Part shown: positions 22,461 through 53,747 of the stretch, piece after piece
Position numbering within the stretch: position 1 is the first letter of the stretch
Layout: each line of letters opens with the position of its first letter
IMG/VR virus record: IMGVR_UViG_3300027782_000025
Span: 186,001-250,000 of that record
Reading direction: 5' to 3' (one strand)
DNA length: 64,000 nucleotides
Position numbers and translations under genes: made by a program
Notes under the pieces: model-generated
Databases searched by the model: none
What the model was told of the DNA's origin: nothing
What the model saw: the letters and a program-made list of their open reading frames with translations, nothing else

Positions 22461-23843
22461 GTGCTAACCATAATACAATATTTCGATGGTAAAATAGATT
22501 ATACAAGCATATTTAACATATTATCTGTGTTTGGTCAAGAAGAACGTCAAGAAATAATTATCGTCCATAAAACTGATCATAAACCGAAGATAGTTCTAAA
22601 AGGCATACAGTTCATAGAAATAAAGGACCATGACGCCACAAATTCTGCATCGTTAAACCACATTATTAATAGCCGAGCTGCTAATTTTATTCTTTTTATA
22701 AATGGTTCAGCATATTTTTTGCCCGGTTTTTACGAAAACATATTAAATTTCATAGCTACTAATAAATCAGATATTGTCTCTATCGACTCCACGATCATTG
22801 ATATCGCCTTTAATTGCGACACTGAAGGCACGAGAACTGGTAGGCTTACTTTTGATCCTGATTTCAAGATAGTTAGGGAAAAAAATAAAGATTCTAATCA
22901 TACCATTATTAACCCTTCGGCTTTTATATTTGATATTAGTGTTTTTAGAGAAGCAGAAGGCTTCGATGTACCTTTAGAGCTAGGAGCAGAGACCGCAATA
23001 GCACTATCGATTGACATTGTTAGGAGAGGATACGAGATTACATTTTACGATGCTTTGCCTATTAAAACGGACTCAAAACCATTCTTTAAGAATGAAGAAA
23101 ACGTAAAATATTTAAAATCACAATATGGCTTTGACATGGCTGGCGAGATATTATCACATCCTATGGCCGAGAGAAAACGCAGCGCTGATTACAGCATGCA
23201 CTTGGATGATTATTATATAAGGCATTTCCCGAATTTTATTATTGATAGAGATTTAAAGCGAAAATTTCGTAATAAAAATATCGTGATTCTATACCCAGGC
23301 GTCTCCTTGGAAGATATAGCGCCGATTAATATTTATCATTATGATTATGTCATAGGAATCGATTTCGCCGGCAGGATTTTTAAATGTGATTTTGTTTTTA
23401 CCCAAGAACTACATATACTCTCTGACCTTCTCAGCACATATAGCAAGCAATCTTTAATAGCGCCTGATTACATATATGACAAGATGCAAAATAAATTCGT
23501 ATTGCTTAAAGATGTGACTAATAAAGTCGCTGCTATTGACACTACCACTGACAAAAATAGTATCATGACTACTGGGCTGTATTTTCTTGATAGTAATCCA
23601 CTTATTTGCCTAACCCATATGTTAATATCAGCCAAGCCAAAGAAGATACAAATATTGGGGGCTGACTTCAAGTGGTCTAAAGGTAAAAGTCATATCGCCA
23701 GCAGTTACTATAATAATGGGTATGCTCTTGCTGAAAATGAATACCATCGCGAAGACTATGCTAATTCTTTAAAATTATTAGAGAGTCTCGGCAATTTGGC
23801 TGAGAACCTTGGCGTAGCTTTGATGAGGAATCATTATGTCTGA
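22461..23843 (+). CDS. Glycosyltransferase: degenerate GT2-like N-domain plus DUF115/Maf (MptE-like) C-domain
   Basis: GTG start. N-terminal GT-A-like pattern (EIIIV...N...FILFIN...FREAEGFD). C-terminal KNIVILYPGVSL...VIGID...KKIQILGADF resembles the DUF115/MAF_flag10 signature. Confidence 0.5.
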   Translation: MLTIIQYFDGKIDYTSIFNILSVFGQEERQEIIIVHKTDHKPKIVLKGIQFIEIKDHDATNSASLNHIINSRAANFILFINGSAYFLPGFYENILNFIATNKSDIVSIDSTIIDIAFNCDTEGTRTGRLTFDPDFKIVREKNKDSNHTIINPSAFIFDISVFREAEGFDVPLELGAETAIALSIDIVRRGYEITFYDALPIKTDSKPFFKNEENVKYLKSQYGFDMAGEILSHPMAERKRSADYSMHLDDYYIRHFPNFIIDRDLKRKFRNKNIVILYPGVSLEDIAPINIYHYDYVIGIDFAGRIFKCDFVFTQELHILSDLLSTYSKQSLIAPDYIYDKMQNKFVLLKDVTNKVAAIDTTTDKNSIMTTGLYFLDSNPLICLTHMLISAKPKKIQILGADFKWSKGKSHIASSYYNNGYALAENEYHREDYANSLKLLESLGNLAENLGVALMRNHYV

Positions 23844-24144
23844 TCCAACTATCATGATTATTATATCGATGCTGATGATTATGATGTCACTGATTATGAT
23901 ATTACTAGTACAATCGACCATATTACTTAATAAGATTATTAATGCTGAGGAAAAGCAGCCGAAGCTTGTTGATAAACAACAAATTATAGGCTATCAACAA
24001 TCATCGCTTGAAAAAGAACCTGTAAAAAAATTCGATACTTTAAAAGTGCCAGATTTGGATCCATTTTCTATAGCGCCTAATTTAAAAAAACCACCAAAAT
24101 CAGCTGGTGGTTTTGGAAATAAAACAGATCAAAATGATCCATGA
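23836..24144 (+). CDS. Hypothetical single-pass membrane protein
   Basis: Strongly hydrophobic N-terminal ~28 aa followed by a Lys/Pro-rich tail; overlaps both neighbours. Confidence 0.6.
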   Translation: MSDPTIMIIISMLMIMMSLIMILLVQSTILLNKIINAEEKQPKLVDKQQIIGYQQSSLEKEPVKKFDTLKVPDLDPFSIAPNLKKPPKSAGGFGNKTDQNDP

Positions 24145-25657
24145 TTTTTCGATAAAAAAACAGGTAAATGATTCTAAGCTGATTACTCAAAAACCGAAAG
24201 TTCCAGAGTTAATTATTAAGGCACCTGTTCATATCATACCTGTCATTGCGCCGATCAAAATCGAAGCCAAGCCCACAATATTGAATGAAAAAACCATTCA
24301 AAAACCGATTCCTATTGTGCCCATCGATAAACCAGCCGAAAAGCCGGAAAAAACAAAGCACTTGCTATCAGGCGACATAATCCCCGATGAAAAATATGCC
24401 GAATATCATAAAAACATTTATGACAAGAAATATTATGAAGCAGTTAAGACAAAAGATGACTTAGTGTTAGGCACATTTGAGACCCCTCCTAAGATCAAAT
24501 CTTTAACTAAAGATGGTGTAGTATATAGAATGGGCGATTTAATTTCTCTCGAAAGGAAACCTATCATGCCGCATCTTGGCCTTGACATTGGCACTAAAAC
24601 GATCGTAGCTTCATTTAAGAACAAGAACGGTGATATAAATTATATATCTGAAATTAATGGGTTTTGGCCTTTCGAAAGAGCCACAGCATTTATTGAAAAC
24701 ATGCTTAAAGATCCAACTAAAGTTAGATCCGACGGCACCAGTAGGCCAGCACATTATTTTAAGCATGAAGAATCAAATCAACTAATCGTGCTTGGACGAG
24801 ATGCTGAAGAATTAGCCTATTCAAAGAATGATACGATGAAAAGACCAATGGCTGAAGGCGGAATTACACCAGATGAAATGTCTATGACGGTGCTGAGCAG
24901 CATCATCCATGGGATCTTAGAGACCGCAGAACGCGATGTTGGTAAGTTTGATAATAATTTGACATTGTGTTATTGCACGACAGCACCGGCTTTAAATAAA
25001 ACAAATAATATTGAATATCACGAAAGAGTTATCGATATCATCCTTAAGAGTTATAACTCACAGAGTGCTATAAAACTTCAAAAGATAAAAGAAAGTCATG
25101 CGATAGTTCTAAACCAAAGCCCAGACGGCTCTGGGATCGGCATCAGCTGGGGAGCAGGCACGGTAACGGTGACATATGTTAAGTATGGCTTAGAAGTTTA
25201 TAGTTTCTGCTGGGTTGGCGCTGGTGACTGGATAGACGAGAATGTAGCGATTAGACATGGCTATGATGCACATGCTATGAAAAGCATGAAAAAGAACAGT
25301 AAGGAAACTCCAACCACAGTATCAAAAGTCAAAATGGACATAGATCTTACCCCCGGCATACAGTATGCCGACAGGCTTCAGTTAGATATATCGCTGCACT
25401 ATGACGTGCTTATTAATCAAGTAGTGTCAGGTATCGTGGCCGGTTTTAAGGAAAATGAGGCGCAGGCAAGAATCGAAAATGGCATTAATGTTTATATGGC
25501 TGGCGGCACTAGCAGTCCGAAGGGCTTTGCTGAGCGTGTGGCTTTAATATTCAATAATAATGAATTACCTTTTGTTTTAAATAAAGTATCTGTGGCAGAA
25601 AAGCCACTATTTACCGTTGCGGCAGGGTGCTTGACAGCAGCAGAGATGTTCGAATAA
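24107..25657 (+). CDS. Actin-fold ATPase (MreB/MamK/ParM-like) with Lys/Pro-rich N-terminal extension
   Basis: Phosphate-1 LGLDIGTKTI, connect-1 ESHAIV, phosphate-2 GIGISWGAGTVTV, adenosine VYMAGGTS, connect-2 VAAGCL. Alternative start at ATG 24134. Confidence 0.75.
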   Translation: MVLEIKQIKMIHDFSIKKQVNDSKLITQKPKVPELIIKAPVHIIPVIAPIKIEAKPTILNEKTIQKPIPIVPIDKPAEKPEKTKHLLSGDIIPDEKYAEYHKNIYDKKYYEAVKTKDDLVLGTFETPPKIKSLTKDGVVYRMGDLISLERKPIMPHLGLDIGTKTIVASFKNKNGDINYISEINGFWPFERATAFIENMLKDPTKVRSDGTSRPAHYFKHEESNQLIVLGRDAEELAYSKNDTMKRPMAEGGITPDEMSMTVLSSIIHGILETAERDVGKFDNNLTLCYCTTAPALNKTNNIEYHERVIDIILKSYNSQSAIKLQKIKESHAIVLNQSPDGSGIGISWGAGTVTVTYVKYGLEVYSFCWVGAGDWIDENVAIRHGYDAHAMKSMKKNSKETPTTVSKVKMDIDLTPGIQYADRLQLDISLHYDVLINQVVSGIVAGFKENEAQARIENGINVYMAGGTSSPKGFAERVALIFNNNELPFVLNKVSVAEKPLFTVAAGCLTAAEMFE

Positions 25658-52786: not shown

Positions 52787-52787
52787 T

Positions 52788-53747
52788 TTATTCTGCCTCT
52801 AAATCATAATCGGCTTTAACCATCATTTCGATTAATTGCTTAATCTCTATTTTATTTTTCCATCCCAATAATGATTCTGCTTTTGCTGGATTGCCAAGCA
52901 GAAGATCAACTTCAGCTGGTCGATAAAGAGCGCTGTCTAAGCACACATAATCTTCATAGCATAAGTCTACACATTCAAAAGCTAGCCTTACCAGCTCCCT
53001 AACAGACGTCGTGGTGCCTGTAGCGATCACATAGTCGTCTGGTTTATCTTGTTGAAGCATCAGCCACATTGCTTCGACGTAATCACCAGCGTAACCCCAA
53101 TCTCTTAATGCTTCTAAATTTCCAAGATATAATTTATCTTGTTTACCATGTTTTATCTTGGCAACAGCTGAACTGATTTTTCTGGTGACAAATTCATATC
53201 CTCTTCTAGGAGATTCATGATTATATAGTATACCTGAACAGCAGTACATTTGGTATGATTCCCTGAAATTTATTGTCATCCAATGGCCATATAATTTGGC
53301 GATACCATAAGGGCTTCTTGGGTAGAATGGCGTATTTTCGGTCTGAGGTGTTTCTAACACTTTACCAAACATTTCGCTTGAACTAGCTTGGTAAAATCTG
53401 ATGTCTTTGTCGACTATTTTAATAGCCTCTAACATGTTTGTAACACCCAAGCCAGTCATGTTTGCTGTGGCTGTCGATTGCTCCCAGCTAATATGCACAA
53501 ATGATTGTGCCGCTAAGTTATAAACTTCATGAGGTCTAACTTTATCGACTATCCTGATAAGAGAGGCTAAATCAACCAAGTCGCCTTGATGTATGTGTAG
53601 TCTTGGAAGTATGTGCTCGATCCTGTTAAGAATCGGCAGACTCGTCCGCCTAACTATGCCATGGACTTCGTAACCTTTAGAAAGTAATAGTTCAGCTAGG
53701 TATGATCCATCTTGCCCGCTTATTCCAGTTATCAGTGCACGCTTCAT
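52788..53747 (-). CDS. gmd: GDP-mannose 4,6-dehydratase
   Basis: [77 protein letters not shown] before ATG53747. Confidence 0.95.

Follow-up and report, generated by a model that had tools for sequence, protein, structure and literature searches.

A two-domain GT27-like/Maf-like protein family and a clade-wide glycosylation toolkit in uncultured freshwater huge phages

Polypeptide N-acetylgalactosaminyltransferases (ppGalNAc-Ts), which make up glycosyltransferase (GT) family GT27, initiate mucin-type O-glycosylation. Maf enzymes transfer 3-deoxy-manno-octulosonate (Kdo) from its cytidine monophosphate (CMP)-activated form onto Ser/Thr (bioRxiv 10.1101/2020.06.03.131540). Among viruses, mycobacteriophage GTs modify structural proteins in the cytoplasm, giving rise to a virion glycan coat, according to the account of Freeman et al. 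2023 given in PMC12619734; Mimivirus carries fibril glycans, and a Kdo pathway accompanied by GT clusters has been predicted for CroV and Fadolivirus (PMC9614988). Large aquatic "moraphages" were reported in 2025 to share four core GT families whose target was not assigned (PMC12619734). Virion glycosylation is thus well documented in giant eukaryotic viruses and in a few mycobacteriophages; huge phages are essentially unexplored. Here, we analyzed a stretch of 64,000 nucleotides (the window), corresponding to bases 186001-250000 of the 274,625-bp IMG/VR viral record IMGVR_UViG_3300027782_000025 (completeness ~70% by CheckV), with a focus on open reading frame (ORF) D, a putative protein O-glycosyltransferase, and on the glycan genes that surround it.

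The source is an uncultured freshwater huge phage, and near-identical DNA is present in several freshwater and lake metagenomes. A first-pass annotation of the window had proposed that the phage encodes an O-glycosylation system for Thr-rich fibres. Virus-encoded glycosylation and Maf-type O-glycosylation are already known; the solid results of the present analysis are the two-domain family to which ORF D belongs and the clade-wide toolkit of glycosylation genes.

A two-domain family with GT27-like and Maf-like halves

ORF D lies in the same orientation as, and only 8 nt downstream of, a block of giant ORFs that ends with ORF C (Table 1), as the first-pass annotation had noted. It has 22 close homologues. 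A search with a profile of its C-terminal half returned 60 representative clusters, and because nearly all of them are ~460 aa long and match in their C-terminal half, the family is a fixed two-domain protein. The matching ESM Atlas cluster is 100% viral. When 51 family members were scanned singly against Pfam, Glycos_transf_2 was detected in 27 and MptE-like/DUF115 (PF01973) in 21, with a best E value of 1.3e-7. The family profile matched 16 ppGalNAc-T (GT27) sequences in the PDB at E 1.8e-36 to 2.9e-23, and the next GT2 followed at 5e-8. Searches of PDB sequences with ORF D and its close-family profile gave nothing useful, a wide profile of the C-domain alone found no Maf or MptE match among PDB sequences, and a genome-wide PF01973 scan had no match at the ORF D locus. 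Through transitive homology and fold, ORF D is GT2/DUF115-like, in agreement with the earlier reading of the gene.

An AlphaFold model built from 19 sequences left the C-domain unmodelled, with a predicted local distance difference test (pLDDT) score of 62; the model from the 51-sequence alignment reached a pLDDT of 90.6. In structural comparisons with VIA-align, the N-domain was closest to GalNAc-T1 bound to a mucin glycopeptide (Z 20.0) and to Toxoplasma GalNAc-T3 (Z 19.3), and other GT-A enzymes did not exceed Z 16.1. The C-domain matched the archaeal kinase MptE (8sd5) with Z 11.6 and Maf (5mu5) with Z 11.4, the latter over model residues 260-460 and chain residues 262-495. Both the GT and the DUF115 fold, which the first-pass annotation had suggested confirming, were recovered in ORF D. 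A Foldseek search of AlphaFold database clusters with the whole model retrieved generic GT2 multi-domain proteins only.

The two halves differ strongly in constraint. Within the close family, 51 of 199 C-domain columns are invariant versus 6 of 205 in the N-domain, and identity is 52-60% versus 24-43%. C-domain features retained across the wider family are G-x-(P)-S, three Asp, G-x-D and S-H, with D295, D301, D310, D402 and S410-H411 present in at least 90% of its members. Compared by spacing alone, the distance between D310 and D402 (92) resembles that between the essential E324 and D415 of Magnetospirillum magneticum Maf (91). In the N-domain, the position of the DxH motif is occupied by N81-G82-S83, and the third metal-ligand segment ("CSHVGH") is not kept in the family alignment to GalNAc-T4. 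Because the DxH motif has been lost and the C-domain is far more constrained, we infer that activity resides in the Maf-like half and that the GT27-like half has degenerated into a scaffold or recognition module. The N-domain is probably not a Mn/UDP-GalNAc transferase.

With its fusion of a GT27-like and a Maf-like domain, ORF D represents a new two-domain family that is so far known only from phages. No description of such a family was found in the searched literature, and nothing relevant was found there on DUF115 or GT27 in phages. A collection of cultured phages contained no homologue of ORF D or of the core of ORF A, returning only distant GT2 and DnaE matches. The small ORF E, which overlaps the end of ORF D, is conserved 3' of ORF D homologues in loci L005, L007 and L013 and in several of the related (G) records.

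Glycosylation genes of the source phage and their distribution

The genome encodes enzymes for two activated sugars. KdsB scored 216.3 bits against the NF003952 model (cut-off 193), so the kdsB gene named by the first-pass annotation is present; it is a divergent member, since it falls under the cut-offs of four other KdsB models. Its start codon overlaps the stop of a 309-aa flavoprotein-like ORF, a pair kept in L005, L007 and L009. The 309-aa product showed Atlas structure matches (template modelling score 0.74-0.78) to Amino_oxidase/NAD_binding_8 proteins, and its look-alikes include NeuB fusions and an "LPS biosynthesis protein" (LPS, lipopolysaccharide) from Bacteroidota; judging from these modelled structures, it may modify the ulosonate. 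As neither KdsA nor NeuB was found in the genome, the Kdo sugar would be supplied by a Kdo-producing host.

The second activated sugar involves Gmd, which exceeded the equivalog cut-off of TIGR01472. The match starts at residue 24, in keeping with a probable true start at the ATG at 53747, the gene end that the earlier annotation had given. Together with an Fcl-like short-chain dehydrogenase/reductase (SDR) encoded outside the window, Gmd can convert host guanosine diphosphate (GDP)-mannose to a GDP-6-deoxyhexose, the product probably being GDP-L-fucose. The Fcl-like gene adjoins that for the flavin-dependent thymidylate synthase ThyX and lies 85 kb from its presumed partner gmd.

Transferase genes are concentrated in a block at 45997-51930. 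Clear Pfam matches bear out the two-domain GT2, the CgeB-like GT and the GT2_5 of the first-pass annotation. The best solved matches of the two-domain GT2 were the chondroitin polymerase K4CP for domain 1 and beta4-Gal-T/GT7 for domain 2. Support for the sulfotransferase-like nature of the 214-aa protein is moderate: besides its HIPKTGGS motif, it has a weak PHROG match (Gal-3-O-sulfotransferase, E 0.0017) and resembles Atlas clusters that carry Sulfotransfer_2. The assignment of the 270-aa protein o270 as a DUF4422-like glycosyltransferase is a lead only.

Outside the window, a second DUF115-like gene encodes a 329-aa protein that aligned to the ORF D C-domain profile with an hhalign probability of 93% (E 3.2e-7). 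This protein also matched PF01973 (E 1.1e-5) and, as its sole NCBIfam match, the LPS Kdo-III transferase WaaZ, weakly (E 2.4e-5). A further small GT2 is likewise encoded outside the window, and the toolkit comprises at least six GT domains in total. Just 5' of the window, a small glyco cluster with a GT2_4/GT92-like GT, Methyltransf_24 and DUF5672 sits among Rad50/SbcC-like, DinG-like helicase and Mre11-like genes.

To place these genes in context, we compared related records in IMG/VR. The two-domain GT2 as query yielded 63 loci on contigs of up to 408 kb, and the ORF D close-family alignment only 2. The comparison set consisted of 36 related records of at least 40 kb, 6 of them near-complete, with the source genome (G000) counted separately. 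Loci with the two-domain GT2 share the order gp32, small ORFs, o225, two-domain GT2, GT1_2, sulfotransferase, GT2_5, o270; gmd is nearby in 13 of the 63. Full-length ORF D relatives occur in 14 of the 36 records, including 3 of the 6 near-complete genomes, and KdsB occurs in 13. Gmd and a second SDR were found in all five complete or near-complete relatives tested. The glycosylation toolkit is therefore a core trait of the whole uncultured huge-phage clade and lies within its conserved replication/recombination region. The genes do not form one operon; they are scattered through this region of conserved order. In the distant relative L010, a gene for Glyco_transf_29, a eukaryote-type sialyltransferase family, lies between the actin-like gene and DnaE (11787-12554, - strand), which points to CMP-sugar chemistry in the clade.

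Table 1 Features of the window and of related regions elsewhere in the source genome (G000). Positions are those of the window unless a G000 coordinate is given
Feature	Position	Strand	Description
ORF A	1408-14664	+	4418 aa; residues 1-518 "Up600" core, then ~3,900 aa of beta-propellers joined by ~10 (TP)n linkers
ORF B	14677-20511	+	1944 aa; beta-propeller protein with two PT/TPTA linkers
ORF C	20524-22452 (TAG)	+	642 aa; Cys-rich, directly 5' of ORF D
ORF D	22461-23843 (GTG start)	+	460 aa; putative protein O-glycosyltransferase
ORF D N-domain	~residues 1-205		GT27/ppGalNAc-T-like GT-A fold without DxH
ORF D C-domain	~residues 262-460		DUF115/MptE/Maf-like fold
ORF E	23836-24144	+	102 aa; small, hydrophobic N-terminal helix (membrane-type); start overlaps ORF D end
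Actin-like protein	24107-25657	+	Pfam Volactin 7.4e-38; weak MamK match
DnaE, first part	26351-27751	+	DNA polymerase III alpha; PHP and start of NTPase domain
Three small ORFs	27753-29031		between the DnaE parts; one with C2H2 zinc finger
DnaE, second part	29018-31741	+	remainder of DnaE
Flavoprotein-like protein	32762-33691	+	309 aa; stop overlaps kdsB start (translationally coupled)
KdsB	33688-34404	+	CMP-Kdo cytidylyltransferase; PF02348 7.7e-36, 124 bits (cut-off 22.6)
Zinc-motif protein	34810-35610	+	weak DnaJ-type CxxCxGxG zinc motif
Cpn10/GroES-like protein	39627-40064	+	N-terminal extension
Pol A fragment	40486-41685	+	399 aa; match to family A DNA polymerase confined to its C-terminal third (profile positions 248-381)
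o225	45997-46674	+	225 aa; no family; end overlaps start of two-domain GT2; 51/63 related loci
Two-domain GT2	46671-48635	+	654 aa; Pfam match; two GT-A domains; 63/63 loci
Glyco_trans_1_2 (CgeB-type) GT	48632-49585	+	PF13524 7.6e-10; 53/63 loci
Sulfotransferase-2-like protein	49587-50231	+	214 aa; HIPKTGGS 3'-phosphoadenosine-5'-phosphosulfate (PAPS)-loop motif; 32/63 loci
Glyco_tranf_2_5 GT	50228-51121	+	PF13712 4.5e-11; 32/63 loci
o270	51118-51930	+	270 aa; DUF4422-like putative GT; Atlas feature and structure look-alikes; 31/63 loci
189-aa protein	52217-52786	-	directly 3' of gmd; no family; close relatives only, 4/63 loci
Gmd	52788-53813	-	GDP-mannose 4,6-dehydratase; TIGR01472 455.7 bits (equivalog cut-off 415); PF16363 9.8e-131
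ORF Z	56682-61988	+	1768 aa; first gene of second beta-propeller/PT-linker giant-ORF block
Fcl-like SDR next to ThyX	G000:C1:152521-154365 (L014)	-	GDP-fucose synthase type; NF047922 E 1.3e-76, below cut-off
Second DUF115-like gene	G000:C1:167563-168552 (L015:3563-4552)	-	329 aa; outside window; IIIGNGPTL and IFGVD motifs
Small glyco cluster	G000:C1:177383-182639 (L105:5383-10639)		GT2_4/GT92-like GT, Methyltransf_24, DUF5672

Candidate acceptors and alternative explanations

The candidate acceptors are encoded next to ORF D. Beta-propellers of the 7-bladed lactonase, RCC1-like, FG-GAP and sortilin types (in ORF A, Lactonase, RCC1-like and Sortilin) make up the globular portions of the giant ORFs, and propeller repeats are common to ORFs A, B, Z, V and U. 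Six giant ORFs genome-wide carry proline-threonine (PT)-type linkers. ORF A has 10 PT-rich stretches, the longest of 55 residues, and ORF Z has 4 shorter ones; across ORFs A, B and Z, linkers of the (TP)n or (TPTA)n type are as long as 61 residues, and Thr content is 10-11.5% in each. The genome contains 115 forward matches to a (TP)5 DNA pattern versus 0 for the reversed control pattern, so the Thr-rich PT stalks described in the first-pass annotation are real. From composition only (propellers, a Cys-rich core, collagen triplets and PT linkers), we infer that these giant ORFs may be virion fibres. At the DNA level, the (TP)n linkers (e.g., 12361-12525) are near-perfect ACN-CCN hexanucleotide arrays of up to ~165 nt, which should be prone to slippage; the number and length of PT linkers differ between the source genome and its 83-86% identical relative G001.

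In relatives at ~20% identity, the ORF D homologue is directly preceded by a gene for a 570-710-aa protein, here termed Up600. This protein contains a 518-aa core with collagen-like G-X-Y triplets, many invariant Cys and a terminal CPNVQ..C, and the core aligned with the N-terminus of ORF A (1408-2961) at an hhalign probability of 100% (E 2.8e-88, 510 aligned columns). In most homologues, the core is followed by a Pro/Thr/Ser-rich linker and then by a variable module, which may be nothing, one or several PKD-like domains; in ORF A, the first PT linker begins immediately after the core. The C-terminal additions, comprising PKD-like and propeller modules, range from 25 aa to ~3,900 aa (loci L093-L104, L010 and ORF A). 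ORF A is therefore a hugely expanded member of this modular family, a striking example of how one gene can grow by modules, and ORFs B and C are lineage-specific insertions before ORF D. ORF C is kept in the close sub-clade only, with 48-50% identical homologues at the same position in L005 and L009. It was rejected as a remote Up600 homologue (hhalign probability 0.2%, BLASTP negative), and its flagellin-like matches (E 0.009 and 0.19) were taken as chance.

Of 14 distant loci, 10-11 have the Up600 core directly 5' of the ORF D homologue; in L011, the genes upstream of the ORF D homologue are unrelated. Among positional arguments for linking ORF D to a fibre-like gene, this adjacency is the strongest, yet it is weak, because gene order is conserved across the whole region.

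Considering these data together, the reading that we tentatively put first, as plausible rather than probable, is that a phage structural protein would be O-glycosylated from a CMP-ulosonate donor, the acceptor being a candidate only. KdsB would activate host-derived Kdo, or a derivative made by the flavoprotein-like protein, to a CMP-sugar, and Gmd and the Fcl-like SDR would turn host GDP-mannose into GDP-6-deoxyhexose. The Maf-like domain of ORF D would then act in the cytoplasm, prior to assembly, transferring the CMP-activated ulosonic acid to Ser/Thr residues on a phage protein, with the degenerate GT27-like half serving as an acceptor-binding or scaffold module. The likeliest acceptor would be the Up600-core product of the conserved neighbour gene, grown into the 4418-aa ORF A in the source phage, where the Thr-rich (TP)n linkers could offer many extra sites. 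The remaining GTs and the sulfotransferase would extend the glycan. That a phage protein serves as acceptor, the Up600/ORF A family being the first candidate, is a proposal of the same tentative standing. By analogy, it is supported by the fact that both domain types of ORF D have characterised members, namely GT27 ppGalNAc-Ts and Maf, that glycosylate protein Ser/Thr. Transfer of a CMP-activated ulosonic acid is hinted at by the KdsB of the same genome and by the WaaZ-like paralogue of the C-domain.

Several observations weigh against this reading. With respect to the enzyme, ORF D itself matches no Pfam family even at E<=1, thus missing the Pfam DUF115 model, and has no PHROG match; its GPS motif reads PGVS; DxH is absent in 50 of 51 family members, the sole exception being P0073 with D-A-H; and MptE, the other structural match of the C-domain, is a kinase and not a glycosyltransferase. 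The complete genome G022 encodes ORF D but no KdsB. With respect to the acceptor, several Up600 homologues are without a P/T linker, and the Up600 and ORF D homologues are separated in G003. The region as a whole is syntenic, with Rad50/SbcC-like, DinG-like helicase and Mre11-like genes upstream and ORF E, the actin-like gene and DnaE downstream. The giant ORFs are thus located between Mre11/Rad50-like and actin-like/DnaE genes, outside any recognisable structural module, and their virion role is putative. Finally, (TP)5 runs were found in only 1 of the 36 related records, the near-identical relative G001 (127 matches, 83-86% identity), and were absent from the other 35, of which 13 have full-length ORF D relatives and 12 have KdsB.

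The last result separates the enzymes from the stalks. Across these records, the co-occurrence of PT-rich fibres with Maf-like and KdsB genes, which the first-pass annotation had suggested testing, was not seen beyond G001. Because (TP)5 runs are absent from 35 relatives while the toolkit genes are clade-wide, the PT stalks, as far as these genomes tell, cannot be the ancestral, conserved or defining acceptor. By this distribution, the glycosylation genes are old at the clade level and the PT stalks are a recent speciality of the source lineage. Of the O-glycosylation system originally proposed, the enzymatic capacity has proved real and larger than first described, and the specific link to PT stalks is not supported. 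Glycosylation of the PT linkers of the source phage is, in our estimate, rather unlikely.

Of the alternatives, the most serious is remodelling of the host envelope, which we consider somewhat unlikely. Here, the toolkit would build or alter the host LPS core, capsule or a secreted sulfated polysaccharide, with ORF D acting on a glycolipid or glycan, and the benefit would be a block to superinfection or less sticking of progeny to debris. Chloroviruses, which have hyaluronan made at the host surface, provide an analogy. KdsB, Gmd and Fcl are classic LPS/capsule genes, yet the window revealed no flippase, Wzy polymerase, ABC exporter or lipid-carrier transferase; the check for these did not extend to the remainder of the genome. 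Further similarities point to polysaccharides, namely the Kdo-III transferase WaaZ as the only NCBIfam match of the 329-aa DUF115-like protein, the likeness of the first domain of the two-domain GT2 to K4CP close to a sulfotransferase-like gene, and the "LPS biosynthesis protein" among the look-alikes of the 309-aa flavoprotein-like protein. In contrast, ORF D has an N-domain that is closer to protein-directed ppGalNAc-Ts than to polysaccharide GT2s (1e-36 versus 5e-8; Z 20 versus <=16), and the ORF D family is so far virus-only. Conservation of the toolkit whatever the fibre architecture also fits an envelope target.

It is distinctly unlikely, in our view, that the genes constitute no single system and are separate auxiliary genes with different targets, held together by the frozen gene order of the clade. 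Replication genes do intervene, with 10 kb between ORF D and kdsB and 12 kb between kdsB and the GT block, and gmd is on the opposite strand. Occurrence is unequal as well, from the two-domain GT2 in all 63 loci through the sulfotransferase, GT2_5 and o270 in ~32 to a nearby gmd in 13; ORF D and KdsB are each limited to a part of the larger records (14 and 13 of 36), and G022 has the former without the latter. Such independence would leave unexplained a specific biochemical match, in that a CMP-ulosonate synthetase occurs alongside two genes whose fold family includes CMP-ulosonate transferases. Among the near-complete genomes, KdsB was found only alongside ORF D (in 2 of the 3 genomes that have ORF D and in 0 of the 3 that lack it), although these numbers are small. 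The corresponding co-occurrence in fragmentary records (8 of 14 versus 5 of 22) is confounded by proximity and phylogeny and was not used as a test.

To our knowledge, Kdo, fucose and sulfate do not occur as DNA adducts. Hypermodification of DNA, with the GTs attaching sugars to the bases of the phage genome in the manner of T-even and RB69-type phages, is very improbable. It would account for the location of the glyco genes, all of which fall within the replication/recombination region in the vicinity of gp32, UvsY-like, RecA, DnaB, DnaE and Mre11/Rad50-like genes, and the Fcl-like gene adjoins ThyX. However, known DNA glycosylation requires a ThyA-superfamily 5-hydroxymethyl or 5-hydroxy pyrimidine synthase (PMC13326640), no ThyA-type enzyme (PF00303) was found in the source record (70% complete) or in five relatives that are 98-100% complete, and the ORF D domains resemble protein-directed enzymes.

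Gene neighbourhood and comparison with described systems

Nearly all genes of the window are on the + strand. From its start, the window encodes ORFs A, B, C and D, the small ORF E and the actin-like (Volactin/MamK-like) gene, followed by DnaE in two ORFs, the 309-aa ORF overlapping kdsB, RecA, DnaB, the Cpn10-like gene and the Pol A fragment. UvsY-like, gp32 and PD-(D/E)XK nuclease genes then precede the GT block, gmd on the - strand and a second run of giant ORFs, which begins with ORF Z at 56682 and extends past the window end. In all relatives examined, at identities as low as ~20% (L005, L007, L009, L010, L011 and G-records), the actin-like gene comes after the ORF D family gene; no PhuZ-type gene was seen in the window.

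The split of DnaE is not an assembly error, since the split and its inserts are kept in distant relatives. The 399-aa Pol A fragment, which stands beside this DnaE-type replicase, is either truncated or highly diverged. The window also encodes a Cpn10/GroES-like protein and a protein with a weak DnaJ-type zinc motif; chaperone-related genes have been reported for the large aquatic "moraphages" (PMC12619734).

Scans around ORF D for promoters (70 versus 65 expected) and terminators (17 versus 11 expected) were at chance level, and a hairpin at 24087-24114 falls within coding sequence. In a lake metatranscriptome, two tiny contigs were identical to ORF D and none mapped to 19001-22460; these are too sparse for an expression class and may be DNA carry-over.

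Among the described systems, Maf (PF01973; M. magneticum 5mu5, C. botulinum and G. kaustophilus) shares its fold with the C-domain of ORF D; the latter has motifs of a similar kind, with a G-x-(P)-S loop and conserved acidic residues, and its genome also encodes a CMP-ulosonate synthetase. Unlike Maf, ORF D falls below the Pfam model and gives no hidden Markov model match to 5mu5; it has neither a flagellin partner nor the Maf flanking domains, carries a GT27-like domain at its N-terminus instead, and is viral rather than bacterial. With GT27 enzymes, it shares part of the Gal/GalNAc-T motif (E177, S183 and G190) and a two-module layout of GT-A domain plus C-terminal accessory domain. It differs from them in having N-G-S in place of DxH, a DUF115 domain in place of the C-terminal ricin lectin, and a fast-evolving N-domain.

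Similarity to enzymes of bacterial surface polysaccharides is more limited. WaaZ is matched by the 329-aa protein, which is related to the ORF D C-domain, and K4CP (PDB 2z86) has two GT-A domains like the two-domain GT2. However, with E values of 2e-5 and 4e-5 the two matches are weak and do not come near the family cut-offs, and no export machinery was seen. If the host envelope were nevertheless the target, the toolkit would equip lytic huge phages with an extensive, conserved programme for remodelling the host surface.

Mycobacteriophages, in the same account of Freeman et al. 2023, carry their GTs beside capsid and tail-tube genes, and their glycans were shown by mass spectrometry. The source phage differs from them in its GT families, in the combination of ulosonate, deoxyhexose and sulfate, and in the position of the genes in a replication region, and its system is known here from genes alone. 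What can be defined from these genes is a clade-wide toolkit of freshwater huge phages for CMP-Kdo and GDP-6-deoxyhexose, with at least six GT domains and a sulfotransferase-like gene, together with a modular fibre-like gene in which a 518-aa core bears additions of between 25 and 3,900 aa. Should a virion protein prove to be the acceptor, phages could wear bacterial-type acidic sugars as a coat, which would bear on adsorption, adherence to mucus or particles, and evasion of immunity or defence; ORF D would also be a ready enzyme for Kdo-type O-glycosylation of PT-rich peptides.

The giant viruses offer the closest parallel in scale: like the source phage, they are very large viruses that encode nucleotide-sugar synthesis, including a CMP-Kdo synthetase, along with many GTs, and their sugar machinery is thought to decorate their own surface fibrils. 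They differ in having eukaryotic hosts and a complete Kdo pathway, whereas the source phage encodes the activation step only and needs a Kdo-producing host. In its most far-reaching form, which we regard as improbable, the ORF D family would be a new class of viral protein O-glycosyltransferase, in which a dead ppGalNAc-T domain recognises Pro/Thr-rich acceptors and a Maf-type domain adds Kdo or a flavoprotein-modified ulosonate from a CMP donor made by the phage, the remaining GTs of the clade and a sulfotransferase then building a sulfated, fucose-containing, mucin-like coat on giant fibres. Such a coat would be the bacteriophage counterpart of the Mimivirus fibril glycocalyx.

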